Source: Epithemia pelagica
Taxonomy: Eukaryota > Protista > Bacillariophyta
Length of the DNA stretch: 64,000 nt
Direction: 5' to 3'
Assembly (NCBI GenBank): GCA_946965045.2
Contig: OX337234.1
Location: forward strand, 3,162,001 to 3,226,000
This document shows, in pieces, positions 9,708 to 57,186 of the stretch (position 1 is its first letter; each line of letters opens with the position of its first letter). The notes under the pieces were generated by a model that saw nothing but the letters and a program-made list of their open reading frames with translations, searched no databases and had not been told where the DNA came from. A program made the translations under genes and the position numbers.

Positions 9708-9939
9708 GCTGGAGGTGTCCGAGGCGTTTCCGTGAGAACTGGAACTGTTGAAGACGATTTCTTCTTCAATTGGCTCAAAGGAGAAGTGGCTCCCTAGAGT
9801 CGATGGCGAAGCGTCGCTTGGGGTAGACAGCTTGTTGGCCTGTCAAAAATCTCGAGAAGGGGTAGTCCGACGATGATGGTCGTTGGGCTAGAACAGAGGA
9901 AACGGTAGCGGGTTAGGCTGTAATTTGGGCGTAATAACC

Positions 9940-10441: not shown

Positions 10442-10446
10442 CTTCT

Positions 10447-18615: not shown

Positions 18616-18809
18616 ACTTCCTAGTCGATGGAGAGGGGAGGAAAGAAGATCTGGCAATCCTCCCCCCCACCATCCTGGGGAGACCTTTGCAGATGATGGA
18701 CAACAGTAAGTACAAGTTTGTATTGTTCCTTCTCAAGAGGAAATTATCTTGCCCTATCTGGAAGGTTCCTTTGAACGATTCGGAAATGAGATCCAGAATA
18801 GGCATTCTT

Positions 18810-18838
18810 TTGACGTATATCGATTCGATATACGTCAA
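18810..18838. repeat. Perfect 29-bp palindrome (14-bp arms, 1-nt loop) in the spacer; also at 22238, 25666, 29093 and with one mismatch at ~54534
   Basis: ttgacgtatatcga-t-tcgatatacgtcaa. Confidence 0.9.
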
Positions 18839-25471: not shown

Positions 25472-26475
25472 ACTTCCTAGTCGATGGAGAGGGGAGGAAA
25501 GAAGATCTGGCAATCCTCCCCCCCACCATCCTGGGGAGACCTTTGCAGATGATGGACAACAGTAAGTACAAGTTTGTATTGTTCCTTCTCAAGAGGAAAT
25601 TATCTTGCCCTATCTGGAAGGTTCCTTTGAACGATTCGGAAATGAGATCCAGAATAGGCATTCTTTTGACGTATATCGATTCGATATACGTCAATATCGA
25701 TCCAATAATTGGAGATAACTCATAATTGTTGTGGTGATCATCCCACTCTCATCACTTTCACCGCCCATTCTCGGATTCATTCACTCGTTGCCATCATCTT
25801 TGGGGAATCGCCCGACCCCTGCTTTTGAAACCAGAGCGTGTATTGGTACTCCTATTTCCTACTCCTTCCGTCTATCTCGATTGTCGATAGTCGATGTTTG
25901 TTTTTAGGAGTACTAAACGTATATATATCACAGATCACAGAGTAGACTTTGCACTGTCAACTGTCAGACGACTTGGCTGTCTGTGCTTCGCCCGCCGCCA
26001 TAGTCCAAAGACAAGAATGTCTTAGCTACGTCTGTTGCGACACAAGTTTCCAGCTCCGCGTTATTGGTCGAGCGTCGAGCCACACACCATGATGAAATGG
26101 AAAACGCAAGTCTCGTTTTCACGAAAACTTGAAATCTCACCGCGAACCACGCACCACGCATCGAAAATCGTAATGAAAACAGTCATCCTCCCTTTTGCTT
26201 CCTTGAGCACCCATGCTTTTCACGTCTTGGATACGACAAGATCGAATCCTTTTCAAGAACATGGCACAACGTTGGATCGGTCGCCAAGACAAGTGATTCA
26301 TCCATTTCAAAAACGTGCCATGGTGGTTGTTTCTCAGCATAAACCAGGAGAAAATGTGTCCGACCACAACATATCCTCTGGTCCGAACGATGAGGCATCG
26401 TCTTCAGGCGCTCTACAGCCATCCCTACCAGTGAACAACGCCAACTTCCCCGTCAAAGAAGGCAATCAAGGAAAC

Positions 26476-28899: not shown

Positions 28900-29371
28900 A
28901 CTTCCTAGTCGATGGAGAGGGGAGGAAAGAAGATCTGGCAATCCTCCCCCCACCATCCTGGGGAGACCTTTGCAGATGATGGACAACAGTAAGTACAAGT
29001 TTGTATTGTTCCTTCTCAAGAGGAAATTATCTTGCCCTATCTGGAAGGTTCCTTTGAACGATTCGGAAATGAGATCCAGAATAGGCATTCTTTTGACGTA
29101 TATCGATTCGATATACGTCAATATCGATCCAATAATTGGAGATAACTCATAATTGTTGTGGTGATCATCCCACTCTCATCACTTTCACCGCCCATTCTCG
29201 GATTCATTCACTCGTTGCCATCATCTTTGGGGAATCGCCCGACCCCTGCTTTTGAAACCAGAGCGTGTATTGGTACTCCTATTTCCTACTCCTTCGATTG
29301 TCGATAGTCGATGTTTGTTTTTAGGAGTACTAAACGTATATATATCACAGATCACAGAGTAGACTTTGCAC

Positions 29372-40596: not shown

Positions 40597-42786
40597 ATGT
40601 CGAGCGACGAGCAAGGAAACATGTCTGAGCAAAGTGTTTGGGTCAAGGTCATCCGAAAAACGGGCAGAGACAATTACGAGGACCTCGGATATCCGTTTCA
40701 GATAGTGCCGCGTCCGGCGAACGTGAGTCACTTGCGCGAGAAAGTCAAGGAAAAGGCGGCAAACAACCTTGCGCATGTTGCCGCTAATGAACTCCTTGTG
40801 TTCGCGCCTGATAAAGACTACAAGAATGAGGAGAAGCAAATGGACCCTTGGGATGCAGTCGAGGAAATTAAAACGAGTTCCAACGAAAGAAACGCACCGT
40901 GCCCGCTGATTGTGGTGGCACCTGTAGAGAAGCTAAACAAGCAAGAAGAGCCATCTGCAAAGAAGGCAAAAAAATTCTCGGAGCTTGTCGCCAAGGATGA
41001 CTACCAAGCCGCGGTCAAATTGCTTAAAGAAAGTGCGGGAGGATACCTTGCAAGAGGATTCGATCCCAAGGTATACCGCGAACCTCATCTTTCTATGGGC
41101 ACGTGGAACAAAGAGGAGATTCAGCAACAACTCTGCGAAAAGCGCGAATTGATTGAAAAAAGACTTGCTTCTTTCAAGCCCACCGATCGTCAGAAGGTTG
41201 TTCTCGGACTTCGCTGTGGCTCCGGTTTCGGAAAAACTCACATCCTGACGGAAGCCCCTGAATTACTTGCCGCTGAGGGCTTGTACGTCACGTACAACCA
41301 GTATCAGGACTTATCGACAGACAAAGATGATCCGGTGAAAGCTCTGCTCATTCGGTTGTTACTTGCCATGTGTGGATGCGCTTCGCAAGACGCGGGGCAG
41401 TTCTTCAAAGAGCCGGCTTCCAGACAATTTTTTGATGTTTCGATGGAAACACTTCGTTTGTGTTTTGTCGGATATGCTAAGGAAAGATTCGAGGCCAAAG
41501 ATCTTGTCATTGGTGTTGACGAGATAATGGACCTTGCCAAACTTAGTTTTCCGGCTGCCCAGTTAGTCATATCCGAACTTGCGTACCTCTCTTTCTCATT
41601 TAAGTCCAACAAACCGGTTTCAAGATGCACTGTCCTGGTCAGTTCTTTGGAGGAGAGCGTCTTTGCGACAAGGAGTGGGCGGCCTGTTGAAGATTGGAAT
41701 CCAAGAAAGGCAAACCGCGCTGCACTTGAATATTTTGCGGCATCCACGGCAGGAGACAAGGAAAATTATATGGCTCTTGTGAACGCAATTTCTGGCGCGC
41801 ATATGCGATCGATTGTCGTTGCCTTTGATCTCCTAAAGCAGGGACACGCACCACGAGTTCGTGCCCTGTACAATTCACTATATGCAAGGATGGGATTGAA
41901 GCTGATTGGGCCAGATTTGAGTGAGGTTCGCGTCTACATTGAAGCATGTATCACGTCTAAAGCTGATCCATCTCCCTCCAACAAACTTGAATCAATTGTT
42001 GGAGAGGACTTGGCTGTCCCTCCAGTGATCATGATGAAGGCGTTTGACAACTCACCAGCTCTTTCTACGCGGTTTGAAGAGCTTTTTAATGCATTTCATC
42101 TTTGCGATGGAGGGCCAGGAAAGCAGCTGGAGGAAATATCCAAGGCGTATGATTTCTTTCGGGCAGAATTACGTCTACCTATTGTACCCGCCAAATCTCG
42201 TATCTACATTCCAAAAGGTCCTGGCTTTGAGACGGCGGAATGGTTCAGGTCATTGCGTTTCCCTGAAGCCATGGAGGAGAGCCGCGAAGCGCTTCTGGAA
42301 ATGCAGTCCGTTGTTTGCGGGTCAAAGAGTCGAAAAGAAGTGGTTGCGACGGCGGTGGTCCCTACGTTTGGTAAGTACTATCACCCAGCCGTTAGTAATC
42401 ACCCCTGGCTTGATCGTTTGGTTGTTGGACAACACTCGAAGGATTCCTTTTGCTTGGTAATTTATCAAGACAAAGTGAATGCCGCTGACTTTCCAGATGC
42501 ATGCAAGAAACTGAACAAGGCAGCGAATGTTCTATCTGGACCACACCAAGTTTTGCTTGTCGTTAACGTGATTGGAGCGACGATCAACACCACAGCTCAG
42601 GCGAGTCTGGAGCGACCCTACATTCTTATTAGGGAAGGAGACGAAGTGAGTTCTTTCTATTCTCGCAATTTCGCGGAAATGGTGCGATACAGTCGGGAGA
42701 GACACCTTCTTTCTACAAATTCGAAAACGGCCGAAAAGTTCTTGACGGCAAAACTGGATCCACATCCACAGGCTGATTCGGACTGA
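40597..42786 (+). CDS. CR-type effector copy 6; native stop lost, last ~19 codons read through antisense ISCA2
   Basis: Full header/NTPase/REase; ...STNSKT|AEKFLTAKLDPHPQADSD* instead of STNSKTV*. Confidence 0.8.
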   Translation: MSSDEQGNMSEQSVWVKVIRKTGRDNYEDLGYPFQIVPRPANVSHLREKVKEKAANNLAHVAANELLVFAPDKDYKNEEKQMDPWDAVEEIKTSSNERNAPCPLIVVAPVEKLNKQEEPSAKKAKKFSELVAKDDYQAAVKLLKESAGGYLARGFDPKVYREPHLSMGTWNKEEIQQQLCEKRELIEKRLASFKPTDRQKVVLGLRCGSGFGKTHILTEAPELLAAEGLYVTYNQYQDLSTDKDDPVKALLIRLLLAMCGCASQDAGQFFKEPASRQFFDVSMETLRLCFVGYAKERFEAKDLVIGVDEIMDLAKLSFPAAQLVISELAYLSFSFKSNKPVSRCTVLVSSLEESVFATRSGRPVEDWNPRKANRAALEYFAASTAGDKENYMALVNAISGAHMRSIVVAFDLLKQGHAPRVRALYNSLYARMGLKLIGPDLSEVRVYIEACITSKADPSPSNKLESIVGEDLAVPPVIMMKAFDNSPALSTRFEELFNAFHLCDGGPGKQLEEISKAYDFFRAELRLPIVPAKSRIYIPKGPGFETAEWFRSLRFPEAMEESREALLEMQSVVCGSKSRKEVVATAVVPTFGKYYHPAVSNHPWLDRLVVGQHSKDSFCLVIYQDKVNAADFPDACKKLNKAANVLSGPHQVLLVVNVIGATINTTAQASLERPYILIREGDEVSSFYSRNFAEMVRYSRERHLLSTNSKTAEKFLTAKLDPHPQADSD

Positions 42787-43517
42787 GGGTTGTCATGAAT
42801 TACAAACAAACTTTTGATCATTTCGACCACATAATCCAAGGTTGCACCTCGCAGCAAGTTCATGGACGAAGAGTCAATGACAACACGGGATCCCTGCGGA
42901 TTGATCCACACCATATCTTCGTTTTCTTCATCGATGCTATCTTCAGTATTGTCCAAGCAATGAAATTCAAATTAATAGGTAAATCCAGAACATCCGGAGA
43001 CTCGAAGGTAAACCTTATCAAGATCATAGCCCTTTTTGGACGCGAGTCACTCCATTTGCTTCCAGCAGGAATCCGTGATAATAAGAAAGTTGTCAGTTAG
43101 CAAGAACGTATCGTGATTGCCTTCTTTGACGGGGAAGTTGGCGTTGTTCACTGGTAGGGATGGCTGTAGAGCGCCTGAAGACGATGCCTCATCGTTCGGA
43201 CCAGAGGATATGTTGTGGTCGGACACATTTTCTCCTGGTTTATGCTGAGAAACAACCACCAAGGCACGTTTTTGAAATGGATGAATCACTTGTCTTGGCG
43301 ACCGATCCAACGTTGTGCCATGTTCTTGAAAAGGATTCGATCTTGTCGTATCCAAGACGTGAAAAGCATGGGTGCTCAAGGAAGCAAAAGGGAAATGGGA
43401 CGAAACTCGATCCGGCCTTTTAACGTGCACAGTACGGAATAATTGTCGTGATACAGAGATGGAATCTCTCATTTTGGAAATGGTTGCCATGCTGTTTGTC
43501 GCCCTTGCCGCCATCAT
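42729..43517 (-). pseudogene. ISCA2: Iron-sulfur cluster assembly protein ISCA2 (HesB/IscA family) pseudogene
   Basis: One frame from caccATG (43517): R/S/T-rich N-terminus, then IITDSCWKQME*LASKK...LRVSGCSGFTY*FEF...LDYVVEMIKSLFVIHDNPQSESACGCGSSFAVKNFSA. Stops at 43047 (TGA) and 42972 (TAA); short deletion before GCSG; 3' end truncated. Confidence 0.88.
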
Positions 43518-43949
43518 GGTGTTCGTTATGGCTCGTTCGTTGATTTTGATGGGTCGAATGTTGAATGCCAGATTTCACTGACCACAAATGGATGACGTGG
43601 ACGAGAATCACCTCTACCTCTATAAGGACCAAGTACCTGACCAAACCATGACGTGCTGTGTAGGAGAATTCGCCGTGAAATACTCGCCCCCGCTGGCGGC
43701 TACACCGTAACCACAACAACAGATTTTCAGCAATAGACCCCTAGCCAAGTAGCTAGACTAGTGATATCAACACTAGGAGTAGTATGCTAGCCTAGTGATA
43801 CTAGCTAGACTCTAGTGATACCATCGCTATGTCTAGGTGACAGACCAATGACGTAAGAGCTAAGGAACAGAAGAAAGGGAAATGAGCGATAAGAGCTCAG
43901 TGTTTTGGAACATCGCAACGTCCAATACGCTTGTATCGTTCTTGTTGCT
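43114..43949. repeat. Left arm of ~840-bp inverted repeat (ISCA2 5' half + motif M + DIRS terminus)
   Basis: Reverse complement of 51354-52218 apart from a few small indels. Confidence 0.95.
43666..43733 (+). repeat. Motif M copy 4
   Basis: gaattcgccgtgaaatactcgcccccgctggcggctacaccgtaaccacaacaacagattttcagcaa, followed by the DIRS terminus instead of a CR gene. Confidence 0.9.
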
Positions 43950-44026
43950 CTGCCCACCCTTACCCTCCCTTTTGGCAAGGATGAGGCGTACGAAATAGGA
44001 GAGGTGTCGGGGGGAAGTTTAAAATA

Positions 44027-44542
44027 TTGGCGGCGCTAGAGCGTCTGTTCCCTCATCCCGACGACCAGGAGGTTCTGTTTTCCGAATTGTATCGTCTGGG
44101 ACTGCGTGGCGGCCGTGTGAGCAACGACGGACAGGAGGTTAAGAAGCGCGTGGCGGCGTTGAAATCGGTGTTTGAAGCCAACGAGCAGCGCCGAGTCCTT
44201 CCTGTTCCTGTGGCAGGAAATCGATCGCCCACACGAGCGACAACGAAAAACAAGGGAGAAGGTTTTTCCAGCTCGGAGAAAAAGTCGCTGGACAGGTGGT
44301 TGGGAACGGCGCGACTGGGGCCACAGAAAGTCAAGGCACATCAGTCGGGGGCCGTGTTGGAAGGCCGCAAAAGGAAAACCGGCGAAGGCGGAGGCAAGTC
44401 TTCGGACGACGACAACGCCGAGGTCAAGTCGCCACCGAGCGAGGTGGTGTATCTGGTAGGTTCAAGTGAGGAGTCGGAAGAAACGTCTGAAAAGACGAAC
44501 AAACGAAAGAGCGAGCCTCCAAAGAAGAAATTGAAAGAATAA
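44027..44542 (+). CDS. Antisense accessory ORF of the DIRS element (charged, low complexity)
   Basis: 171-codon ORF (TTG start in the track); its TAA directly abuts the next ATG (44543). Confidence 0.4.
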   Translation: MAALERLFPHPDDQEVLFSELYRLGLRGGRVSNDGQEVKKRVAALKSVFEANEQRRVLPVPVAGNRSPTRATTKNKGEGFSSSEKKSLDRWLGTARLGPQKVKAHQSGAVLEGRKRKTGEGGGKSSDDDNAEVKSPPSEVVYLVGSSEESEETSEKTNKRKSEPPKKKLKE

Positions 44543-45753
44543 ATGGAGGAGATCGAGGAGTTGGTGCGCAAGTTGGAGGGATTAGCATTGCGACAGGTGG
44601 AGATAGCGCGGAGGCTGATACTCGGTCTTATCCACGCCTTTTTTTGCGAATATTCGCAAATCTTCGCAAAATCCGGGTGCCAATGGAAAAATTTTGCGAA
44701 GGTTGACCTTCGCAAATGGCCATTTTCGTGGTACGAAGGTTTTGCGAAGGTTTTTGCGAAGATTGCAAAGGTTTAGTGCTACCTCTTCTTTTAAGGAAAT
44801 TTTGCTACATACTCCTAGCAACTACATCAACATACCTCTAGTACCTCTAGCTCACCAAATGTTGCGCACAAAGCACCATGGATGGTACAGGAAAGGACCA
44901 TCATTGTTGCTATTTATGTACTCGCTCTTGGTGTTGATAGGTGGTGCTCCTTCAACTATGGAAACTTCTTTTGATATCTATCTTGTGTAATGGAGGAGGA
45001 TTCTCCATGACCATCACTCACTGGAGGAGGGATGGGAGTGGGTGCTCTACTGCTGTTGCAACTTCTCACCATCGTGGTGTATCGTGTGTTCCATTTTTGG
45101 ACCACCCATAGATATAGGAGTAAGGCGCTACTTAGATGGAGATACGAAATACCTAGCTGACCTAGACGATGCCATGCGAAGGACTGCGAAGGTTGCGAAT
45201 TGCGAAGTACGTTTGTACTGGATGGACCACCGCATTTTTGGGTGCCCCCGGATGTTGCGAAGATTTGCGAATATTCGCAAAAAAAAACGCTTAGATAAGA
45301 CCGAGTATGAGGGAACTGCGATGTGAGGGGAGAGCAGGTGGCGCGATTACGGTTGAAGTGGACCCTGAGGGGTTATCACCTTTGGCAGAGGATGGGTCTG
45401 AGGGTGGGAGTAGCCGGCGAGGACGAGGATTTTGGGGCTTCAGGTTGGGAAGCCCAGCAAGTCAAGGACGCGGCCGCCAGAGGGCGACAACGGAGAATTT
45501 TTTTGTGGGGGACCGCGTAAGGGTGTTGAACACTGTCCCGCCGCCAGAAGGAGAGGAACGGTCGGCGGCGGATCAAGTGGGAGAGGCAACTAAGGTAACA
45601 AAGGCAAGAATCCGGGTAAAAACAGACAGTGGTGTGGAAGTATACAGGGCCCCTACGAACGTGAGGGTGATTGGAGAAGGATTGGAATGTCGGGCAAGAC
45701 GTCAGACGGGACGCTTTGCAACTGGATTTGCCGGGGTGAGCCCGCACATGTGA
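44543..45753 (+). pseudogene. Antisense accessory ORF (coiled coil + KOW/SH3-like), split by a TIR element
   Basis: Removing 44619-45310 gives a 172-aa ORF: MEEIEELVRKLEGLALRQVEIARRL|RELR...FFVGDRVRVLN...RIRVKTDSGVEVYRAPTNVRVI. Confidence 0.6.
44619..45307. mobile_element. 689-bp non-autonomous TIR element (MITE-like) with 3-bp TSD TGA
   Basis: TIR tactcggtcttatc...tttgcgaatattcgcaaatcttcgcaa mirrored at 45250-45307; TGA at 44616-44618 and 45308-45310; many ttgcgaa/ttcgcaa subterminal repeats. Confidence 0.88.
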
Positions 45754-45817
45754 GATATAGGGTAGAAACGTAAAAGGAAATAGCAAAAGACGTATATGCA
45801 ACGAAACTTTTGGTACG

Positions 45818-47239
45818 TTAGATAGATAAGACGCCCATGATGGCCTTGGTGGTGAGCGGGCCAATCGCCTTTGAGCAATCACGGAGGTAATGCTCTACCG
45901 ACTGTTGCGTCCATCGCAACCGGAACGCAATGGTTTCAGGCGGGACGCCACAGTTCCAAAGCGCTACGGCCGCGGTAACACATGTGGAATGAGCGACCAA
46001 GCATTTAAGGTGGCGTCTATGATAGTGAGCGGGATCGGGATACGCCAACACACAGGTGTGGCGAAGCTCGGTGACAATGGCTGCCGAGGTGAGGTAGACG
46101 GGGGCCGGGGGGGACAAGGACTCCTTGTAACAGGCCAGAGGCTCCGAAGGGGAAAGATGCAGAGTTTGGGCCCTAATGAGGATGCGTAGGGTGGCTTGCA
46201 GTGGACACAGGAAGGGGTGTTGTGCACGCCGAAAGGTGCGCGTGGTGAAGTTTCTCTTGCTTTTGTCATGCCGGAAACGGATTCGGACAGCGACTAGGGA
46301 GTAATGAGCCGGTGCCCCGGCGGCAGTGATTTCCTGATTTTGCTCCGTTAGGAACGTGAAATCCGACGCAACAAACGCGATTGGCTTTCCGACCCAGGAC
46401 GGATCGTTGGGGCAGTGTGGCACTGGGGAATATTGGGACTTCGAGCCATTGGTCTGGGCATATTCGCCCGCACGGGAACCAGTGAAAATCCCCAAACACA
46501 ACCAATCATAAACGGTGGGAAGGAAAAGGACGTGCAAGGCCGGGGACTCATCAAGGAGAAGCCGGACCCGAGTGGCCAGGGTGACAAACATGTCATGGGT
46601 GATTGGTTCACGACGGTCAGTGGGTCGAAACCACGTGCGTCTAAATGCCAGTTGATGCGCCAAGATGGGATGGAGATTGGTGGGGTTTTCGGGACAGTGA
46701 GTTTGCAGAAAACGTCCCCGCACCAACTGGAGGTAATGTTTGGCGGCGACCAAATAATTGTTGAGGGTGGAAGGGGTGAGGGTGTCAGCGGCGAGCAGAT
46801 TGTGACCATTGGCAACATAATGGAGGAACAGAGCTAGGGTGTTGAGACATTCGCCGTCGCTGAGGCGCCGGAAAAGTTCGGCGTCATATCCATACTTGAT
46901 AGACCAGCGTTGAAAGTAACCGGCGCGAGAGTCCACAGCTTGGTCGTTGCGGATGCGAGTGCATCCGCGGTCGCATTGTGTTTGAAAGCCAATAAGATCA
47001 CGGAGAGCAGTTTCTGCGGGAGCCGGTAAGCTTGACGTGGGTCCAAGCGAGGCATAGACAGATCGATAACGGATTCCCATGTGGGGCTTTCGTAGGTCTG
47101 GACAAAAGATCGGCGTTGTGGTTGTCTTCTCCGGGTATGTGGGATGCCTGCAACTGGACCGACAGAGGAGAAGTGGTGAGAAGGGCTTGGAAGAGACGGG
47201 CAAGGCGCCGAACTGATGGCCGTTTACTCCGTGCTGCAT
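45818..47239 (-). CDS. Tyrosine recombinase of the DIRS element, probably inactive
   Basis: GIFTGSRAGEY (R), RFRHDKS (K), HSTC (H-x-x-R with R to C at 45980-45982), RLRW, VEHYLRD (Y). Confidence 0.88.
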   Translation of the reverse strand: MQHGVNGHQFGALPVSSKPFSPLLLCRSSCRHPTYPEKTTTTPIFCPDLRKPHMGIRYRSVYASLGPTSSLPAPAETALRDLIGFQTQCDRGCTRIRNDQAVDSRAGYFQRWSIKYGYDAELFRRLSDGECLNTLALFLHYVANGHNLLAADTLTPSTLNNYLVAAKHYLQLVRGRFLQTHCPENPTNLHPILAHQLAFRRTWFRPTDRREPITHDMFVTLATRVRLLLDESPALHVLFLPTVYDWLCLGIFTGSRAGEYAQTNGSKSQYSPVPHCPNDPSWVGKPIAFVASDFTFLTEQNQEITAAGAPAHYSLVAVRIRFRHDKSKRNFTTRTFRRAQHPFLCPLQATLRILIRAQTLHLSPSEPLACYKESLSPPAPVYLTSAAIVTELRHTCVLAYPDPAHYHRRHLKCLVAHSTCVTAAVALWNCGVPPETIAFRLRWTQQSVEHYLRDCSKAIGPLTTKAIMGVLSI

Positions 47240-48329
47240 GAGTTAACCACGAAAGGGCGGACGTATTGTCCGTCCGAAGAGTGAATACAAGCTCATGGGG
47301 ACGAGGTTGGAGGCGAGAGGCCAAGGTAACCACAACCCAAAAATCAATAATGAGGAAGACAAACTCTAATAAATTGATATGCCATGGGGCATTGGGGTCA
47401 TCATTGTCGGCGGTGTGCTTGGTGACTTGTTGCATATTTCTTGGAATGACGAAACCATGACATTCCAGGTCCCTTTTGGTCAACCGCCACATGAACGGAA
47501 ACTGAGCATGGTTTAGCCATCCACCAAGACCCTCGATAGAAGCGTCGCCGAGAACAGTAAAGTGCGAGGTCCGGGGAATAATGAGCCCGAGTGGCCGAGT
47601 CCACACAGTAGAAGGGGCATCTGGCCGACAGGCTTGGCGTAGGAGATCTAGGTCATGCAGGACTTCTCTCGATATACTGAACCGGGTTTTGACCCAGAAA
47701 AACGAAGAAGCCGAGCTTTGATTGCGACTTTTGGCACCACGAATGGCATCGTTCAAGGCAAATTGTAGTCCCAGTGCGGCATACACGCCAAAAACAGAAA
47801 CAGGAGCACTATGACGGACGAGGCCGAGAATGCTGGTGGCCGCAGCTTGGGGGGAGAGACGGCGTCCACCGGCCGTGGTAGGAGGACCGGACCACAAATG
47901 GGTTAGGTACAGATGGAGCTGCTCTTTTTTGTGGTCAGGCCAGCTTACGGTCAAGTCCCTTGTGTTGATGACGAAGCCGAGAAACTTGAGTTTATTGGAG
48001 ATTTTGCGAACGAATTTCACGGGATTGATGGCCTCGGGACGACCAATGTCTTCGTCAGGGAATCCGAAGGTCACGTATGCAGCAAGGACGCTGCTACTGA
48101 CAAGTTGGTGAATGTTGCGTCAAATCACCGCGCCGCCGGTGTCATCCACGAAGGGCGCGTAGACCGGGGCATGCTGAGAGAGGGGTGTCGAGACCGACAC
48201 GGCGAGTAGGTTTGCCTTCCTTTGATTCAGCAGATCTGGAGTTGCTGGGGAAAAGGATCGGACGGTGTCGACAGACGGAGGGGGCGGAAGGGCAATGGTA
48301 TTGCTCAGAGATGTGGCCGGCGTCAACAA
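46998..48329 (-). pseudogene. DIRS reverse transcriptase (C-terminal part) + RNase H
   Basis: PFVDD at 48141-48152, in-frame TGA at 48120, then KFLGFVINT, LGDASIEGLGGW, HINLLEF, RTDNTSALSW, NADLLSR; N-terminal RT motifs not recognisable. Confidence 0.82.
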
Positions 48330-48792
48330 GGAAGGGAGATATCGGGACGGGCGTCAGGAAATCCCAAGCGAAATGTCCAAACAATTTGGGAGAGAGGATG
48401 TCTTGGGCCGAGGGGTTCGTGGGGGAAAAGTCGTGGACGGAGGACACCGCCGAAGAGTCAGAGGCGAAGCCCCATTTCCGACGATGAAAAGTCAGCGGCC
48501 AGAGAGGGTAGAGCAACATTGGACCCCATTGAGAGGAGAGGCCGAGAGCATGGAGTGCCGACCGATCGTCATCGTGCAAAAAGGGATCGAGCAACACCAG
48601 GAAACAGACCAGACGCGGGTTGTCGACGTCTGATTGGTTAAAAACATTTGGTATGAGATCTCGGGAGGACCGGGTACAGTTGGCTAATCGGGGAGGAGGA
48701 GAAACCGTGGGAATAGTGGGGAGAGGGACGTCTGTATCAGGGAGCGAGAGACGAAGATCCCTAGTGGTGGAAGGGATCGATTGCTGCTCGGG

Positions 48793-51372
48793 TCAGGTGC
48801 TCGTAGACGGAGGGTTGGCCGGGGCCGGTGGAGGGGCCGGGGTGGCTTTGCCCATGAAGGTTTGAAATTCCGCGGTGACGGACAGATAAGGACGGATTTT
48901 GTCATGGTGGCAAAAATCCCATAATGGGCGAAGGCTGGCCTGGGACCATTCAGAGGCTGCTTGGGGGGAAAGGCACACATGATGGCGGTTGCACGGACTG
49001 GTGCGACGTTGTCGAGATTGACCGGTACAGCCGGCAGCACAGTATTTATCTGTAAACATAAAAAAGAATTGTTTGTTGTCCCAACGAGGGACAGGAACTT
49101 CGGATTCCATTAAAAGCTTACCTGGATGGGTATACTTAGCACGACCCTCGGTCGATAGATGTAGAAGTGGCACAATGGCCTTTTTACCATCGATAGGTGG
49201 AGCACGTGGCAACGAAGTGGAAGTCGGGCGGGGCTTCTTTGCTTGAACCTGGCCAGAGGGATCAGCCGGACGACGCCGAGAGGCATTTTTGTCGGGCGAT
49301 CGAGAGACCGGAAGAAAATAGGCGGGAGGAGCACGTCGCATGACTGGGGACAACGAGTTGGTGACCTTGTGGGTGATGATGGTTGGATGCGTGAACAGCA
49401 GTGAGAAGTTGGCTTGCCACTTGACACAATATTGTTGATTGGTTTCAGCACCTAACGACGTAATGTCGTAGATTGCGGCGCACTGGGTGGTAAAACCATG
49501 GGCTTCGGCGGTGGCCGGGCAACAGATCTGAGAGCGATTCTGCGAACCCCAGCGGAAGAATTGCTGGAAGAGTTCACAGACCGAAAAATGGATCGCTACG
49601 GAGAGAGAGAGGGCAAAAGTGGGATCGGAGGAGGCCAAGGTTGTCCAGGCTGACGCAGTGGCGGGGTTCTCTAATTGGGCCACGGCCCACAAAAGGTTTC
49701 CTGCAACGGGCCCACGGAGGAGGAACGACGAGAAGCCTGGCAGGAAGTTTGGAAACGCATCATCGTTCGACAAGATGCAGTTTAGGTAGAAGACAAGATT
49801 CCGGAGCAGCGCGGCCGACTGTCCGCAGGTGAGGCCGGTGACCGGAAAACGACCCTCGGGTGAAAGGGAGATAGACCACAAAAAATGCCAGGGCGTAAGC
49901 GCGGCTTGGAGAGAGCGGGGGTCTTCTCCATGGAGGGTGAGACCGGCGCTGATTCTGAAGGTTTGAATTGCTTTCCAAACGGGGTCCGCATGCATGAACG
50001 AGGGAGATAGAGAGACTTGAAATGGGGCGGTGGCATGCGTTGAAGCTTCCAGCGCGACGTCTAAGAGATCCACTGCAGAGTATTCAGCATGCGACAAACG
50101 GGTGTCCGATGAAGAATGAGGGAGGACCTGCCTCAGCCAGTTGTTATTTATGAGGCTGGGGGTGTGAAGGAGAGCAGCTGCGTATGGAGGACGCGGCCGG
50201 TGGGGGTTTTGAGTGGGATCAAATAACTGTTGGGACGTGGGGAGAACGACCATGCCAAGAAAACACCAGGGAACCAAAAAGGGGGGAAGGGACTCGGTGT
50301 CTTGATGGAAAAATTGGTCAAACGAAAACTGGCCTTTCTCCAAGGAGACAAAAGGAGACATGGTTGGAACATAAGCCGAAGGAGGGATTACGGAGTGTAG
50401 TAGACGGGTCCGAGAGCTCGTGAAGAACAACGGATTATCGATCGTCAGACCCCACCAGGGAGATTCCTCGGCGACAATTTGCTGAGTGTCCCATGGACGC
50501 CGCTGGATGGCAAGAGGGTTGAAAGCATCAGGATATGGAATGGAGGGTTGCTCAGAGGCAGGTGGCTGGGTGAGATCAATCACCTGGGGTTCCTCTGGAA
50601 TGGTAGGTTCGACAGTGGGTGGATGGTCCGCCGTGGGTGCGACTGGGGGTGCAGGAGGTGGGACAGCGGTGAGGTTCGGGGGAGACGCACAGTCCAATGT
50701 GTAAGTTGTGCGAAAACCCAAACGAGGTGGCCGAGGAGGAGTCTCCAACATGTTTACCGTCTGGGTAGGCGGAGAGTGAACGGAGGTGGTGTGAAACGGA
50801 CTCAAAGCTTGAATGACACCTGGTAACTGTTGTAGTAGGGCTTTGTCTTGAAAATAGACGAAATTATAGTTGTTTTTCCACGAGGCGACTTGTGGCCGAA
50901 GGAGAAACGGAAGATAAGGAAAAAGAACCTCATCTGAAAACGGTTGTAAATCCAAGTGTTTGGAACGGAGACTTGAAAGACCCTTCCAGAAGAAAGAACG
51001 GAATTTTGCTATCATCGTGGGAGACAGCGGAGGGGTGGATAGTAGGTCATAAAAGGCATGGGCGGCTAAGACAAACTTTGGGTGAATGATAAGTGCTTCA
51101 TAGGAGGTAAATTGATTTGGTGGGGATAGTGATGCCGTCATCTGGGCAAAATCGGGTATGATGCTGATGGTAGAATGCCACGTACACGCAAGTTGATCAG
51201 CGTGGTGACGGATGGCCGAAAACAACATTGACGTGTAGGGATTTTCCAGCCAAGAAAGCGCTTCGGCCAGCGAGTGAAGACGTTCGTCAGAAGTAGGTTG
51301 AGAACGTGCGCTTGTGTTGGGGACATGGGGAAGAACTTTTGGCAAGCACGCGAAGCAACAAGAACGATACAA
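48793..51372 (-). CDS. DIRS ORF1 (gag-like)
   Basis: 859-codon ORF first in the element, with a C-terminal Cys/His cluster (YCAAGC...PCNRHHVC); assigned by position, and the true start is uncertain. Confidence 0.6.
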   Translation of the reverse strand: MYRSCCFACLPKVLPHVPNTSARSQPTSDERLHSLAEALSWLENPYTSMLFSAIRHHADQLACTWHSTISIIPDFAQMTASLSPPNQFTSYEALIIHPKFVLAAHAFYDLLSTPPLSPTMIAKFRSFFWKGLSSLRSKHLDLQPFSDEVLFPYLPFLLRPQVASWKNNYNFVYFQDKALLQQLPGVIQALSPFHTTSVHSPPTQTVNMLETPPRPPRLGFRTTYTLDCASPPNLTAVPPPAPPVAPTADHPPTVEPTIPEEPQVIDLTQPPASEQPSIPYPDAFNPLAIQRRPWDTQQIVAEESPWWGLTIDNPLFFTSSRTRLLHSVIPPSAYVPTMSPFVSLEKGQFSFDQFFHQDTESLPPFLVPWCFLGMVVLPTSQQLFDPTQNPHRPRPPYAAALLHTPSLINNNWLRQVLPHSSSDTRLSHAEYSAVDLLDVALEASTHATAPFQVSLSPSFMHADPVWKAIQTFRISAGLTLHGEDPRSLQAALTPWHFLWSISLSPEGRFPVTGLTCGQSAALLRNLVFYLNCILSNDDAFPNFLPGFSSFLLRGPVAGNLLWAVAQLENPATASAWTTLASSDPTFALSLSVAIHFSVCELFQQFFRWGSQNRSQICCPATAEAHGFTTQCAAIYDITSLGAETNQQYCVKWQANFSLLFTHPTIITHKVTNSLSPVMRRAPPAYFLPVSRSPDKNASRRRPADPSGQVQAKKPRPTSTSLPRAPPIDGKKAIVPLLHLSTEGRAKYTHPGKLLMESEVPVPRWDNKQFFFMFTDKYCAAGCTGQSRQRRTSPCNRHHVCLSPQAASEWSQASLRPLWDFCHHDKIRPYLSVTAEFQTFMGKATPAPPPAPANPPSTST

Positions 51373-52218
51373 GCGTATTGGACGTTGCGATGTTCCAAAA
51401 CACTGAGCTCTTATCGCTCATTTCCCTTTCTTCTGTTCCTTAGCTCTTACGTCATTGGTCTGTCACCTAGACATAGCGATGGTATCACTAGAGTCTATCT
51501 AGGTAGTATCACTAGGCTAGCATACTACTCCTAGTGTTGATATCACTAGTCTAGCTACTTGGCTAGGGGTCTATTGCTGAAAATCTGTTGTTGTGGTTAC
51601 GGTGTAGCCGCCAGCGGGGGCGAGTATTTCACGGCGAATTCTCCTACACAGCACGGCGCGTCATGGTTTGGTCAGGTACTTGGTCCTTATAGAGGTAGAG
51701 GTGATTCTCGTCCACGTCATCCATTTGTGGTCAGTGAAATCTGGGAGTGCACTTCTTGATTCGACATTCGACATTCGACCCATCAAAATCAACGAACGAG
51801 CCATAACGAACACCATGATGGCGGCAAGGGCGACAAACAGCATGGCAACCATTTCCAAAATGAGAGATTCCATCTCTGTATCACGACAATTATTCCGTAC
51901 TGTGCACGTTAAAAGGCCGGATCGAGTTTCGTCCCATTTCCCTTTTGCTTCCTTGAGCACCCATGCTTTTCACGTCTTGGATACGACAAGATCGAATCCT
52001 TTTCAAGAACATGGCACAACGTTGGATCGGTCGCCAAGACAAGTGATTCATCCATTTCAAAAACGTGCCTTGGTGGTTGTTTCTCAGCATAAACCAGGAG
52101 AAAATGTGTCCGACCACAACATATCCTCTGGTCCGAACGATGAGGCATCGTCTTCAGGCGCTCTACAGCCATCCCTACCAGTGAACAACGCCAACTTCCC
52201 CGTCAAAGAAGGCAATCA
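51354..52218. repeat. Right arm of the inverted repeat (includes inverted motif M copy 5 at 51574-51641)
   Basis: Reverse complement of 43114-43949. Confidence 0.95.
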
Positions 52219-54340
52219 AGGAAACATGCCTGAGCAAAGTGTTTGGGTCAAGGTCATCCAGAAAACGGGCGGAGACAATTACGAGGACCTCGGAGATCCG
52301 TTTCAGATATTGCCGCGTCCGGCGAACGTGAGTGACTTGCGCAACAAAGTCAAGGAAGAGGCGGCAAACAACCTTGCGCATGTTGCCGCTAATGAACTCC
52401 TTGTGTTTGCGCCTGATAAAGACTACGAGAATGAGGAGAATCAAATGGACCCTTGGGATGCAGTCGAGGAAATTAAAACGAGTTCCAACGAAAGAAACGC
52501 ACCGTGCCCGCTGATTGTGGTGGCACCTGTAGAGAAGCTAAACAAGCAAGAAGAGCCATCTGCAAAGAAGGCAAAAAAATTCTCGGAGCTTGTCGCCAAG
52601 GATGACTACCAAGCCGCGGTCAAATTGCTTAAAGAAAGTGCGGGAGGATACCTTGCAAGAGGATTCGATCCCAAGGTATACCGCGAACCTCATCTTTCTA
52701 TGGGCACGTGGAACAAAGAGGAGATTCAGCAACAACTCTGCGAAAAGCGCGAATTGATTGAAAAAAGACTTGCTTCTTTCAAGCCCACCGATCGTCAGAA
52801 GGTTGTTCTCGGACTTCGCTGTGGCTCCGGTTTCGGAAAAACTCACATCCTGACGGAAGCCCCTGAATTACTTGCCGCTGAGGGCTTGTACGTCACGTAC
52901 AACCAGTATCAGGACTTATCGACAGACAAAGATGATCCGGTGAAAGCTCTGCTCATTCGGTTGTTACTTGCCATGTGTGGATGCGCTTCGCAAGACGCGG
53001 GGCAGTTCTTCAAAGAGCCGGCTTCCAGACAATTTTTTGATGTTTCGATGGAAACACTTCGTGCGTGTTTTGTCGGATATGCTAAGGAAAGATTCGAGGC
53101 GAAAGATCTTGTCATTGGTGTTGACGAGATAATGGACCTTGCCAAACTTAGTTTTCCGGCTGCCCAGTTAGTCATATCCGAACTTGCGTACATCTCTTTC
53201 TCATTTAAGTCCAACAAACCGGTTTCAAGATGCACTGTCCTGGTCAGTTCTTTGGAGGAGAGCGTCTTTGCGACAAGGAGTGGGCGGCCTGTTGAAGATT
53301 GGAATCCAAGAAAGGCAAACCGCGCTGCACTTGAATATTTTGCGGCATCCACGGCAGGAGACAAGGAAAATTATATGGCTCTTGTGAACGCAATTTGTGG
53401 CGCGCATATGCGATCGATTGTCGTTGCCTTTGATCTCCTAAAGCAGGGACACGCACCACGAGTTCGTGCCCTGTACAATTCACTATATGCAAGGATGGGA
53501 TTGAAGCTGATTGGGCCAGATTTGAGTGAGGTTTGCGTCTACGTTGAAGCATGTATCACGTCGAAAGCTGATCCATCTCCCTCCAACAACCTTGAATCAA
53601 TTGTTGGAGAGGACTTGGCTGTCCCTCCAGTGATCATGATGAAGGCGTTTGACAACTCACCAGCTCTTTCTACGCGGCTTGAAGAGCTTTTTAATGCATT
53701 CCATCTTTGTGATGGAGGGCCAGGAAAGCAGCTGGAGGAAATATCCAAGGCGTATGATTTCTTTCGGGCAGAATTACGTCTACCTATCGTACCCGCCAAA
53801 GCACGTATCTGCATTCCAAAGGGTCCTGGCTTTCAGACGGCGGAATGGTTCCGGTCATTGCGTTTCCCTGAAGTCATGGAGGAGAGCCGCGAAGCGCTGC
53901 TGGAAACGCGGTCCGTTGTTTGCGGGTCAAAGAGTCGAAAAGAAGTGGTTGCGACGGCGGTGGTCCCTACGTTTGGTACGTACTATCACCCAGCCGTTAG
54001 TAATCACCCCTGGCTTGATCGTTTGGTTGTTGGACAACACTCGAAGGATTCCTTTTGCTTGGTAATTTATCAAGACAAAGTGAATGCCGCTGACTTTCCA
54101 GATGCATGCAAGAAACTGAACAAGGCAGCGAATGTTCTATCTGGACCACACCAAGTTTTGCTTGTCGTTAACGTGATTGGAGCGACGACCAACACCACAG
54201 CTCATGCGAGTCTGGAGCGACCCTACATTCTTATTAGGGAAGGAGACGAAGTGAGTTCTTTCTATTCTCGCAATTTCGCGGAAATGGTGCGATACAGTCG
54301 GGAGAGACACCTTCTTTCTACCAATTCGAAAACGGTGTGA
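51815..54340 (+). CDS. Chimeric gene: ISCA2 N-terminal 134 codons fused in frame to an intact CR-type Ubl/NTPase/REase effector (copy 7), 841 aa
   Basis: caccATG at 51815; MMAARATN...FPVKEGN matches the ISCA2 N-terminus, then QGNMPEQSVWVKV (header ATG 52226); no stops to 54340. Confidence 0.75.
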   Translation: MMAARATNSMATISKMRDSISVSRQLFRTVHVKRPDRVSSHFPFASLSTHAFHVLDTTRSNPFQEHGTTLDRSPRQVIHPFQKRALVVVSQHKPGENVSDHNISSGPNDEASSSGALQPSLPVNNANFPVKEGNQGNMPEQSVWVKVIQKTGGDNYEDLGDPFQILPRPANVSDLRNKVKEEAANNLAHVAANELLVFAPDKDYENEENQMDPWDAVEEIKTSSNERNAPCPLIVVAPVEKLNKQEEPSAKKAKKFSELVAKDDYQAAVKLLKESAGGYLARGFDPKVYREPHLSMGTWNKEEIQQQLCEKRELIEKRLASFKPTDRQKVVLGLRCGSGFGKTHILTEAPELLAAEGLYVTYNQYQDLSTDKDDPVKALLIRLLLAMCGCASQDAGQFFKEPASRQFFDVSMETLRACFVGYAKERFEAKDLVIGVDEIMDLAKLSFPAAQLVISELAYISFSFKSNKPVSRCTVLVSSLEESVFATRSGRPVEDWNPRKANRAALEYFAASTAGDKENYMALVNAICGAHMRSIVVAFDLLKQGHAPRVRALYNSLYARMGLKLIGPDLSEVCVYVEACITSKADPSPSNNLESIVGEDLAVPPVIMMKAFDNSPALSTRLEELFNAFHLCDGGPGKQLEEISKAYDFFRAELRLPIVPAKARICIPKGPGFQTAEWFRSLRFPEVMEESREALLETRSVVCGSKSRKEVVATAVVPTFGTYYHPAVSNHPWLDRLVVGQHSKDSFCLVIYQDKVNAADFPDACKKLNKAANVLSGPHQVLLVVNVIGATTNTTAHASLERPYILIREGDEVSSFYSRNFAEMVRYSRERHLLSTNSKTV

Positions 54341-55116
54341 ACTTCCTAGTCGATGGAGAGGGGAGGAAAGAAGATCTGGCAATCCTCCCCCCACCATCCT
54401 GGGGAGACCTTTGCAGATGATGGACAACAGTAAGTACAAGTTTGTATTGTTCCTTCTCAAGAGGAAATTATCTTGCCCTATCTGGAAGGTTCCTTTGAAC
54501 GATTCGGAAATGTGATCCAGAATAGGCATTCTTTTGACGTATATCGATTCGATATTCGTCAATATCGATCCAATAATTGGAGATAACTCATAATTGTTGT
54601 GGTGATCATCCCACTCTCATCACTTTCACCGCCCATTCTCGGATTCATTCACTCGTTGCCATCATCTTTGGGGAATCGCCCGACCCCTGCTTTTGAAACC
54701 AGAGCGTCTATTGGTACTCCTATTTCCTACTCCTTCCGTCTATCTCGATTGTCGATAGTCGATGTTTGTTTTTAGGAGTACTAAACGTATATATATCACA
54801 GATCACAGAGTAGACTTTGCACTGTCAACTGTCAGACGACTTGGCTGTCTGTGCTTCGCCCGCCGCCATAGTCCAAAGACAAGAATGTCTTAGCTACGTC
54901 TGTTGCGACACAAGTTTCCAGCTCCGCGTTATTGGAAGAAAAGGTCGAGCGTCGAGCCACACACCATGATGAAATGGAAAACGCAAGTCTTGTTTTCACG
55001 AAAACTTGAAATCTCACCGCGAACCACGCACCACGCATCGAAAATCGTAATGAAAACAGTCATCAACGATACCCGCCACATACAGTCAAACAATAGACCA
55101 GCATCCTTGGGTCAAT

Positions 55117-57186
55117 ATGCATGATCAGATGGAGTCTGACCCAGAATCCTTTGATCAAGTATGGGAAAAGCTTTGGAGGACCCATGGCTTTTGTCCTTCC
55201 AACACCGAATCGCAAGCAGAGCGTGATAAGTGGCGCTCGCTGTACGAAAATTGCTCTAATGAAAACTGTCCACTAGTTAGAGAAACGCTCCGAATGCATG
55301 TATCTTCGTACAAGAACCAACAGAATGATTACAAGAAGAAAATAGCCGAGATGGCCGACGATTGCAAGAAGGAAGTGCGGAAATACAAGAACCAACAGAA
55401 TGATTACAAGAAGAAAATAGCCGAGATGGCCGACGATTGCAAGAAGGAACTAGCCGCGATGGCCGACGATTGCAAGAAGGAAGTGCGGAAATACACAATT
55501 GAAGGTCTCCTGGTCGATCAACACGAGTTTCCTTGCACCAAGAAAGGTGGAACAGTTTCGGGAGCGCATTCTTCTTACAATTATGATCGGGCGATGGCAT
55601 CTCAATCGAGACAGTTTGTAAATAAGCCCATCGACCCTGAACTACTTCCCGACCGCACAAAACGCAGGCATTCCAGTATGCTTTGTAAATTCTATGGTGG
55701 CATGCAAACATTCGGAAGTGAAGCTGACATTCAGTCGTATGTCCGGAGTGCTCTGGAAGATGCAGTCACCGTTGTCCAAGGACTGATTGATGGCAACGGT
55801 GACGGTGAGAACAACTTGCTAACGATTCGTGCTGAAGCAAGTATGTTTTCGAACAGACCGGACCTTATCGCTGTATCTTATGAGCGCTTTCACGGAATGC
55901 CTCTTTTTGCTGTGGAAGTCAAACAGCCCTGGAAGGGCAAGATCAATGATCGTATTTGGGGCCAAGTACATGATTATGGGGAATTCATGCGATTGCAGGG
56001 CCACTACAACCCATTTGTCGTGCTAAGTTCTTTTAACGAGTCGTATCTTCTATGGAATGCCAACGATGCTAGCTGTGATCGCGTCGCAAAAGAGAGCCAC
56101 AACCGATTTACAAAGGCGACCTTTGCACAAATTTGGAAGAGTCTCCATTCTCAGAGGCTCGTGAACACTCCATCCCCGCGAGGTGTAGAGGACCCAAAGG
56201 AATCGATGCCAAGAACAGACAAGAGCTCGGACAGGAACCTGTTTCATTCAGAGTCGACCACATCGAAAGACCTTGTCTGTCTGCTCGTGAATGGGCTCAT
56301 CTGCAGTCTCACAAATTTCCAAGGACCATCTAAACTGTATTTGTGGCATAGCGTCTGTCTGAACGATGTGTACGTTATGGAGTTGACACAGAAGGGATAT
56401 GAGTTCTGTTACCAATCGTTCACCGTTACGCCTTGGAACCCAGAACTTCTAAAAGGAGAAAACACTTTTTACTTGGTTGAACTAATTGGTGTCGGGATTA
56501 CCTCACGCGTCTTTCGGGCTATCTCAAAACAAAATTCTTGTGAATGTGTCATAAAAATGTATGTACGAGAGTACGATGAAACAAATGGTTATGCCAATAT
56601 TCCGCCAAAGCAGTTCCAGACAAATGCTAAGGAAACAATGAATCGTGAGCATGACATGTACAAAGTTATCTACTCGAGTCTCGGGATAGAAACATTTCGG
56701 ATAACTTTGAATGGTCTTGAATGCCTCATTCTTCCCTTCTTCCGTCCTGTCCAGAAGCACCAAAGGGAGGAGGCGTTGCAGGGCGTCAACGCGTGCCTAA
56801 TGAAGTACTTCAAGGCGTTGAACGAAAGCAATTCTGTCTTTTACCAGTTTAACAAAGACGATCAGGCATGGAGACACTGTGGTTATTTTCGAGAGGAATT
56901 GGTTCTCTTCGATTTGGCTGAACTTAACGAGCAAAGCTACGACAGTGACAAGCAGAAGGAGTCTGTAAGGACGCATGAAAAACGCCTTCGGGAAAGATTC
57001 GTCGAAGGATCTTATGACAAGAAACAAAACACTGAAATAATGCGGAAAGCACCCTTTTTCAGCAAGCAGACTCAGAAATCAGGAGTTACGCAGAGAAGTC
57101 CGCAACTTCTCGACAAGGAGACTCCGAACTCAAGGGTTGCGTCCATGGCTACTAAGGAGGAGGAGAGTGAAATTGGTTCATTGTAG
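55117..57186 (+). CDS. CR-type REase-kinase effector, intact copy
   Basis: Near-identical to 35372-37441 but retains LVLFDL; probable start at 55129. Confidence 0.78.
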   Translation: MHDQMESDPESFDQVWEKLWRTHGFCPSNTESQAERDKWRSLYENCSNENCPLVRETLRMHVSSYKNQQNDYKKKIAEMADDCKKEVRKYKNQQNDYKKKIAEMADDCKKELAAMADDCKKEVRKYTIEGLLVDQHEFPCTKKGGTVSGAHSSYNYDRAMASQSRQFVNKPIDPELLPDRTKRRHSSMLCKFYGGMQTFGSEADIQSYVRSALEDAVTVVQGLIDGNGDGENNLLTIRAEASMFSNRPDLIAVSYERFHGMPLFAVEVKQPWKGKINDRIWGQVHDYGEFMRLQGHYNPFVVLSSFNESYLLWNANDASCDRVAKESHNRFTKATFAQIWKSLHSQRLVNTPSPRGVEDPKESMPRTDKSSDRNLFHSESTTSKDLVCLLVNGLICSLTNFQGPSKLYLWHSVCLNDVYVMELTQKGYEFCYQSFTVTPWNPELLKGENTFYLVELIGVGITSRVFRAISKQNSCECVIKMYVREYDETNGYANIPPKQFQTNAKETMNREHDMYKVIYSSLGIETFRITLNGLECLILPFFRPVQKHQREEALQGVNACLMKYFKALNESNSVFYQFNKDDQAWRHCGYFREELVLFDLAELNEQSYDSDKQKESVRTHEKRLRERFVEGSYDKKQNTEIMRKAPFFSKQTQKSGVTQRSPQLLDKETPNSRVASMATKEEESEIGSL

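Follow-up and report, generated by a model that had tools for sequence, protein, structure and literature searches.

The Fusion Gene and Its Junction

The window considered here is a stretch of 64,000 nucleotides from the diatom Epithemia pelagica (contig OX337234.1, positions 3,162,001 to 3,226,000 of the forward strand), and all positions given below are counted from its first letter. At 51815–54340 on the plus strand it holds an open reading frame (ORF) of 841 amino acids, in which the 5′ part of an ISCA2-like gene is joined in frame to a gene of the CR family, which encodes a candidate Crinkler-type header, a predicted P-loop NTPase, and a predicted restriction-endonuclease-fold domain. 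The frame is open from 51668, has its ATG at 51815 in the context caccATGATGG, and ends with the stop codon at 54338–54340. From the 5′ end, a stretch of ~107 bp from the native ISCA2 upstream region, homologous to contig C1 (51708–51814), is followed by 134 ISCA2-derived codons (51815–52218), the junction (52217–52218), the CR header, a candidate ubiquitin-like domain of the Crinkler type, with its linker (52219–52543), an AAA+-like NTPase (52544–53311), a helical middle region (53312–53776), and the C-terminal domain with the stop (53777–54340), all on the plus strand.

The parentage of the two parts is clear from their identity to other copies. Nucleotides 51815–52216 are identical at 402 of 402 sites to an ISCA2-like copy at 43517–43116 on the minus strand, and differ at 7 of 360 sites (3 synonymous and 4 non-synonymous, ~98% identity) from exon 1 of the ISCA2 gene on C1. 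On the 3′ side of 52217, the sequence is 98.1% identical to an unfused CR gene (40612–42730), whose product starts with MSSDEQGNM. The two parts meet in a 2-bp CA microhomology at 52217–52218, where ISCA2 codon 135 is combined in frame with CR codon 6, and only the first five codons of the CR header (MSSDE) are gone. The parental sequences at the join are GGCAATCA-CGATAC for ISCA2 and GACGAG-CAAGGAAAC for the unfused CR gene, while the fusion reads GGCAATCAAGGAAAC, that is, ..GGCAATCA/AGGAAAC, the CA being common to both parents. A loose end of the unfused start is found in the read contigs at 52217, and the ATG found in frame at 52226 is equivalent to Met9 of the unfused gene. The in-frame fusion of 134 ISCA2 codons to a CR header, as proposed in a previous sequence-only reading of this DNA, is thus confirmed.

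The junction itself is certain, because it is present in five copies in the window and in at least two on another contig. Its open frame has to be judged with more caution, since a break between two co-oriented coding regions is in frame with a prior of about 1/3, and because the copies are so young the open frame alone is no evidence of selection. The ISCA2-derived segment contains out-of-frame ATGs, and the in-frame ATGs of the 51815 copy are at codons 1, 2, 10, and 16. Residue 85 of the fusion is a leucine, whereas C1, the tandem copies described below, and four diatom orthologues have a methionine at this position of the RxMVVVSQHK motif. Exact look-ups of the 841-residue protein returned no record, a result of little weight given that the gene caller of the collection picked other starts; the 29-nt junction was absent from the JGI metagenome contigs scanned, and the 5′ region had no match in a phage database.

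The ISCA2 Parent Gene and Its Dead Copy

A search of the genome (60.5 Mb, 23 contigs) with 51500–52230 returned as relatives an inverted copy in the window at 43114–43807 (96% identity), the C1 copy (94%), and four copies of 51939–52230 (100%) at window positions 16214, 19333, 22761, and 26189. The ISCA2-like gene on C1 has an intact reading frame, in which a PF01521 domain, containing the cysteines of GGCSGF and CGCGSSF, comes after an N-terminal extension. This domain scores 35.7 bits against the Pfam cut-off of 26.3, its homologues are labeled "iron-sulfur cluster assembly 2" or "accessory protein" at JGI, and the nearest named homologue is from the diatom Epithemia. The fusion has no PF01521 hit, residues 1–134 lying upstream of the Fe-S_biosyn domain and its three cysteines (C...CGC), and it is therefore ISCA2-derived rather than a member of the A-type Fe–S carriers.

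The inverted window copy is an ISCA2 pseudogene (42730–43517, minus strand), located 9 kb from the fusion, of whose 5′ part it is the donor or the twin. Relative to the intact C1 frame, it carries a TGA at 43049–43047 and a TAA at 42974–42972, which arise by CGA>TGA and CAA>TAA, respectively, and has lost 12 nt within the FVDAGGCSGF motif. The part homologous to C1 extends from only 107 bp upstream of the ATG to 42729, and the pseudogene and the unfused CR gene meet tail-to-tail with their 3′ ends at 42729/42730. The assignment of the donor to ISCA2 in the sequence-only reading is borne out as far as an ISCA2-like A-type Fe–S carrier is concerned, the C1 domain passing PF01521, but the donor is a pseudogene copy rather than the working gene.

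The C1 gene (G000:C1:6623698-6633670) is also interrupted, at about codon 120, by a 9.15-kb long terminal repeat (LTR) retrotransposon with a 5-bp target duplication (GGATG), which belongs to the same family as the element at window positions 2375–10443. Because the C1 gene is interrupted and the window copy is dead, the assembly shows no intact ISCA2 gene. An RNA-like run contains both C1-type halves, and although its contig across the insertion site has k-mers in common with the paralogues, an intact allele probably exists.

Family, Motifs, and Predicted Folds of the CR Body

The Walker A (GSGFGKT, 52823–52843) and Walker B (VDE, with D-E at 53123–53128) motifs of the NTPase and the D...QDK motif of the C-terminal domain (D at 54017–54019, Q-D-K at 54071–54079) are all present in the fused copy, at positions that hardly vary in an alignment of 41 family sequences, in agreement with the previous description of an open 841-residue frame with intact Walker A/B and restriction-endonuclease-like motifs. 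The whole CR protein gave no hit against Pfam. A word-indexed search found only 10 relatives, with 41–49% identity outside the species, while a profile search of 1.84 billion representatives yielded 240 clusters (counted at 50% identity), 103 of them at E ≤ 1e-30, whose N-termini vary widely in length.

The AlphaFold2 model built on the 41-sequence alignment has a predicted local distance difference test (pLDDT) score above 90 for CR residues 110–707 and below 50 for the header. Foldseek matches of the NTPase include FtsH, Tn7 TnsC, ORC/Cdc6, RFC, and STAND NLRs, with E values of ~4e-5 to 5e-4. The last 188 residues, modeled alone, reach a pLDDT of 94.6, and the structures matched are BamHI, MspJI, MUS81, and EndoMS by Foldseek (E 0.02–0.2) and R.BspD6I, Can2, MspJI, EcoT38I, and NucS by VIA (Z 4.4–5.3, the overall range being 4–5.3). 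Each of these matches is weak, and the list is uniform: PD-(D/E)xK nucleases occupy the top of the lists of both aligners, and the D...Q-D-K residues are found on the expected strands. The models thus indicate a C-terminal module in which a P-loop NTPase is coupled to a restriction-endonuclease-fold domain.

For the header, hmmscan against PF20147 (Crinkler) gave E values of 0.005–0.0075 and scores of 17.5–17.9 bits, under the cut-off of 24.6, and 62 of the 100 nearest clusters in the ESM Atlas carry PF20147, with scores of 0.92–0.93. These weak but consistent signals make it a candidate Crinkler-type header. At the unfused CR start, no signal peptide was detected. The part of PMC5289972 drawn on here, which summarizes Zhang et al. 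2016, describes a CR layout of NTPase, helix-turn-helix (HTH), and restriction endonuclease (REase) behind a ubiquitin-like header. The architecture of the CR body matches this layout, the helical middle region occupying the place of the HTH. The view of the body as an NTPase and REase-fold protein with a Crinkler-like header is accordingly supported by the motifs, the Foldseek and VIA folds, the PF20147 signal below cut-off, and the Atlas neighbors.

The Inverted Arms and the Retroelement

The ISCA2 5′ sequence is found in two arms of inverted orientation (43114–43949 and 51354–52218), which flank 7.4 kb of DNA. Between them lies a tyrosine-recombinase (DIRS-like) retroelement (43950–51353, minus strand), classified by its motifs, with no match to Pfam; it contains a candidate tyrosine-recombinase ORF (45818–47239) and an RNase H-like ORF (46998–48074), and a Pro-rich ORF (48793–51372) is found in the same region. 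The outer ~290 bp of the arms represent an element terminus that is found elsewhere in the genome, and the remainder consists of ISCA2 flank and coding sequence. In the right arm, the outer part (51354–51707) is mostly retroelement terminal repeat, pieces of which recur on C17 and C7. The sequence-only reading had suggested that the fusion may stand under a housekeeping promoter, which is not supported, as only the ~107 bp of native upstream DNA are shared with C1 and the sequence beyond is the terminal repeat of the retroelement.

The coding-proximal 454 nt of the arms are 100% identical, while the rest of the arms contains indels and reaches 95–99% identity, and the CR bodies show a divergence of ~2%. 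A 20-nt indel on one side and the loss of homology on the other delimit the perfect tract exactly, which resembles the outcome of gene conversion between inverted repeats, or could reflect a very recent origin. The 20-nt segment (51745–51764) is present in the 51k arm, is also found in C1 with ~15 of 20 nt, and is deleted from the 43k copy. Because it keeps these 20 nt, the 51k arm cannot simply have been copied recently from the 43k arm as it now stands. A fold-back read artefact was considered as the source of the inverted arms and rejected, the arms differing by indels and flanking 7.4 kb of unique DNA.

CR Cluster, Tandem Array, and the Other Haplotype

Comparison of the window with itself reveals at least eight CR copies, and others are located on contigs C4, C8, and C11 and elsewhere on C7. 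The unfused CR paralogue (40597–42786, plus strand, 729 amino acids) has its own start, MSSDEQGNM. It no longer has its natural stop and ends with 17 codons that run antisense to the C-terminus of the ISCA2 pseudogene.

The region 16214–29373 (plus strand) is composed of four tandem copies of a unit that equals 51939–55064 plus one C, with junction copies at 16493, 19612, 23040, and 26468. In all four units the EGN/QGNM junction is kept (100% identical), while the ISCA2 part starts at codon 42, codons 1–41 being gone, and the N-terminal extension of the tandem ORFs is read-through of the 3′ flank of the preceding unit. The fusion junction is therefore not unique but is carried by the four tandem copies in the window and by at least two copies on the other haplotype. 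In three of the units, 418 bp are inserted into the header; the insertion supplies an ATG (19857), an RGG-rich module, and a 104-nt GT...AG intron (20136–20239), which is spliced out according to a loose end in the RNA-like run X3 described below. The inserted module lies at 19833–20250, 23261–23678, and 26689–27106, and a gene of the other haplotype (P0161) begins at its ATG. The methionine at 52226 is kept in all copies, and elsewhere in the genome the CR header sits on other bodies (P0290–P0292). The family thus shows modular recombination of headers and bodies together with a clustered, lineage-specific expansion.

Transposable elements and further duplications are found in the same cluster. 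A CR copy at 1702–11851 is cut by an LTR retrotransposon with minus-strand ORFs at 2901–9707, whose 504-bp LTRs (2373–2876 and 9940–10443) are 100% identical, and its insertion is therefore very recent. A second LTR element (29372–35081) has identical LTRs of 216 bp. Beside CR genes there are duplicated 689-residue ORFs (35372–37441 and 55117–57186) with a weak match to DUF5898 (E 1.8e-5) and kinase-like glycine-loop and VIK motifs, which may be CR-type kinase modules. GT92 genes are also duplicated in the window.

In the European Nucleotide Archive (ENA) record ERZ21939226, the 1.73-Mb contig ctg1356l behaves as the other haplotype, which was sampled over 39 kb. It contains two fusions of the truncated type, of which P0002 is intact and P0286 is frameshifted, and a CR gene without fusion (P0159) that has its natural 3′ end and flank. 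Neither the full-length fusion with its presequence nor the ISCA2 pseudogene nor the retroelement was found in these 39 kb; the full-length form is seen on one haplotype only. As the truncated junction occurs on both haplotypes, it either predates the split of the haplotypes or moved between them. A 5.8-kb insertion (L016:3781-9626) with a 948-residue minus-strand ORF, not present in the window, lies immediately before this unfused CR gene on the other haplotype.

Sequencing Runs and Expression

All sequencing runs were examined as Logan contigs, X1 and X2 being assigned to DNA and X3 to RNA on the basis of intergenic depth, contig sizes, and the spliced intron. In X1 and X2, contigs extend up to 0.5 Mb, intergenic DNA is covered, and the depth is ~92 per assembly copy. 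In these DNA-like runs, the copy-specific segment 51711–51837 is found at a depth of 94, without mismatch and as a single copy, and 51939–52218 at a depth of 646, corresponding to ~7 copies; the tandem joint 55064>51939 is also present. The 14.7-kb contig ctg834l of ERZ21939226 is 100% identical over 38711–52786, although it probably derives from the same data.

X3 shows no depth over 51427–51680 or 54856–55100, and the intron is spliced. It contains the C1-type ISCA2 5′ sequence with C1-specific upstream DNA, the C1-type exon-2 continuation, and CR bodies. Both C1-type halves of ISCA2 are thus represented in X3. Contig 17 of this run was considered as proof of an uninterrupted C1 ISCA2 mRNA and rejected, as its 3′ part shares k-mers with paralogues and has few C1-specific single-nucleotide polymorphisms. 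One X3 contig ends at 54773 in 18 T on the plus strand, which fits neither a plus- nor a minus-strand poly(A) tail. In the polyA metatranscriptome X5, just one 222-nt fragment of the 5′ ISCA2-derived part was found (51832–52053, depth 2), with C1-type letters at 51845 and 51860. Expression of the full-length fusion finds no support in the reads, which in the form of Logan contigs cannot link 51815 with 52218.

Targeting and Selection

The first 35 residues of the fusion comprise 7 R/K, 1 D/E, and 8 S/T and contain no hydrophobic h-region of a signal peptide, which argues against the diatom endoplasmic reticulum or plastid route. The maximal hydrophobic moment of the N-terminus is not significantly above that of shuffled sequences (303/2000). 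In the orthologues, a basic N-terminal extension of 50–85 residues is followed by MVVVSQHK, an S/T/P-rich linker, FPV..G, and the domain. The previous description of the ISCA2 part as a presequence has therefore to be restricted: the basic, presequence-like character of the N-terminus stands, but it covers ~84 residues and is followed by ~50 residues of the mature N-terminal part of ISCA2. By analogy with the established knowledge of ISCA proteins, import into mitochondria is plausible for a product started at Met1.

Pairwise Nei–Gojobori ratios of non-synonymous to synonymous substitution rates (dN/dS) for the CR body are 0.49–0.91 for the older pairs and 0.45–1.42 within the array. Because the counts are small (e.g., 13 synonymous and 29 non-synonymous changes), these values are not distinguishable from neutrality.

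Origin of the Fusion and Alternative Explanations

We consider it rather probable that the ORF at 51815 is a real but very young chimeric one, polymorphic between haplotypes, and that it results from DNA rearrangement in a transposon-rich, segmentally duplicated CR cluster. By default, such a fusion is to be read as a structural variant that differs between the haplotypes and is either neutral or mildly deleterious. The sequence of events may have been the following. A partial copy of the C1 ISCA2 gene, comprising 107 bp before the ATG and the gene itself as far as its last codons, would have landed tail-to-tail on a CR gene and decayed. The ISCA2 5′ end would have come to stand in inverted orientation on both sides of the tyrosine-recombinase retroelement, and the one on the far side would have been joined to codon 6 of another CR copy via the 2-bp microhomology, in frame by chance. 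The junction would later have been taken, truncated at its 5′ end, into the tandem array. The fusion would then be one outcome of the swapping of N-terminal modules in the CR family. The amplification is not tied to mitochondrial targeting, because the four tandem copies and at least two junction copies of the other haplotype lack the first 41 codons.

Several observations weigh against a variant without function. Every residue conserved in the family is intact in the fused copy and nothing marks it as dead, and the full identity of the coding part of the arms could reflect constraint instead of conversion or recent origin. In X3, an 814-nt contig stops exactly at 52218, from where the ISCA2 continuation is a separate contig; such a break in the k-mer graph means that there is a second continuation, i.e., the fusion junction, and RNA bearing the junction thus probably exists from some copy, full-length and truncated copies being indistinguishable. 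X3 shows only C1-type 5′ variants, the window-type 51845G, 51860A, and 52070T not being seen. To take this as a sign that the fusion is not expressed was rejected, because Logan contigs pop variant bubbles and the DNA-like runs lack these variants as well, which makes their absence from X3 uninformative. One alternative, raised in the sequence-only reading, is a working new gene, whose Met1-started product would be imported into the mitochondrial matrix and would act there as an ATP-regulated nuclease, e.g., on mitochondrial DNA or in organelle inheritance or conflict. Its frame is open and its catalytic residues are intact, its N-terminus is basic and S/T-rich with few acidic residues and no signal-peptide core, the donor orthologues have equivalent extensions, the ISCA2 start context is kept, junction k-mers are probably present in the RNA-like run, and the depth of CR k-mers in this run is similar to or above that of ISCA2. 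This explanation is nevertheless unlikely. The read contigs give no evidence of a full-length transcript, the first 41 codons are missing from most junction copies, one of which has a frameshift, and the full-length form does not occur in the sampled part of the other haplotype. Moreover, the 5′ part does not differ from that of a pseudogene and has the M85L change where the diatom orthologues are conserved, the native promoter region is represented by only 107 bp, dN/dS is near neutral, and the hydrophobic-moment test is not significant. That the ISCA2 presequence now directs a Crinkler-type AAA+ NTPase/restriction-fold nuclease into the mitochondrial matrix, with expression driven by the 107-bp stub or by the retroelement end, we regard as quite doubtful, and a link to mitochondrial DNA or organelle inheritance would be purely conjectural.

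A further alternative is that the ISCA2 fragment serves as promoter or 5′ leader only, with transcription beginning within it or a short distance before it, and that an ordinary, non-mitochondrial CR protein is made from the methionine at 52226 or, in the three 954-codon copies, from the ATG of the inserted module. It would explain why the tandem copies were amplified with just ISCA2 codons 42–134 and no native ATG, and why the methionine at 52226 is conserved in all copies. Furthermore, the RNA-like run covers CR bodies and includes the spliced intron of the module, but has no depth over the array joint at 54856–55100, so that transcripts of the array start at or after the ISCA2-derived segment. 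On the other hand, the out-of-frame ATGs in this segment would impede scanning, and the ATGs at codons 1, 2, 10, and 16 of the 51815 copy would be used if it were transcribed. Such a role is improbable too, with a somewhat larger chance than that of a working mitochondrion-directed nuclease. A mis-assembly, in which the presequence arm is wrongly joined to a CR body among near-identical repeats, appears highly unlikely. The region is indeed a separate and hard-to-place 14.7-kb contig in the ENA record, short-read unitigs cannot phase 51815 with 52218, and the shared segments are 99–100% identical. Yet the inverted arms are distinct loci because they differ by several indels, the structure is no simple palindrome such as a fold-back read would give, the copy-specific segment 51711–51837 is free of mismatches at single-copy depth in a DNA-like run, and the junction recurs in the window and on another contig. 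A young chimeric ORF born by rearrangement within the CR cluster is therefore the explanation that we prefer.

Implications and Comparison with Known Systems

Should the fusion protein be produced and taken up by mitochondria, it would be the first case of a Crinkler-type nuclease directed to an organelle; a literature search for a Crinkler protein with a mitochondrial presequence found nothing relevant. It would then represent a clean natural example of a toxin-like module retargeted by presequence capture, and the cell or a selfish element would gain a nuclease acting on mitochondrial DNA, e.g., in uniparental organelle inheritance or organelle-level conflict. Even if the fusion is neutral, the locus captures the birth of a gene by fusion at an early and datable stage, with the donor, the pseudogene intermediate, the junction, the derivatives, and a haplotype without the full form all visible. 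It also shows retroelements and microhomology joins shuffling the N-termini of an effector-like family in a free-living alga.

In plants, transfers of organellar genes to the nucleus have given rise to new genes by the capture of a pre-existing mitochondrial presequence. The present fusion is similar in that a nuclear gene whose product belongs in mitochondria has supplied its 5′ end, including the start codon and the presequence, in frame to a coding region of unrelated origin. In the plant cases, however, the recipient is the transferred organellar gene, whose product has to get back into the organelle, and the function is shown. Here the recipient encodes a putative toxin-like nuclease, the donor copy is itself a pseudogene, and the product is a predicted protein. 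With Tn7 TnsC and the AAA+ ATPases FtsH, ORC/Cdc6, and RFC, the NTPase domain has the fold in common (Foldseek E ~1e-4 to 5e-4), but at identities of 9–16% and TM-scores of 0.2–0.4 over the whole model, and without transposase partners, and we claim no membership in these families.

The closest parallel is provided by the CR effectors of the NTPase, HTH, and REase type (PMC5289972, in the part drawn on above). Like the fusion, they consist of a small header, a P-loop NTPase, a helical region, and a restriction-endonuclease-fold domain, and they are likewise characterized, in that account, by lineage-specific expansion, clustering, header swapping, and an NTPase resembling that of transposon AAA+ proteins (TnsC). 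The present system differs from what that part describes in that it belongs to a diatom and not to a pathogen, has no signal peptide, and carries a host-gene fragment with an organellar presequence before the header. It differs further in that no Pfam model reaches its cut-off, the family of 240 clusters being unannotated.

Free-living eukaryotes offer another precedent in AACRNL, a Crinkler-like gene that has been amplified with flanking transposons (PMC12957317). Like it, the present, apparently Crinkler-derived family occurs in an organism that is not a pathogen, multiplies together with transposable elements, and has degenerating N-terminal targeting parts. AACRNL is an ADP-ribosyltransferase of teleosts with experimental support, whereas the protein described here is an NTPase–REase known from its sequence, and the elements associated with it are LTR and tyrosine-recombinase retroelements.

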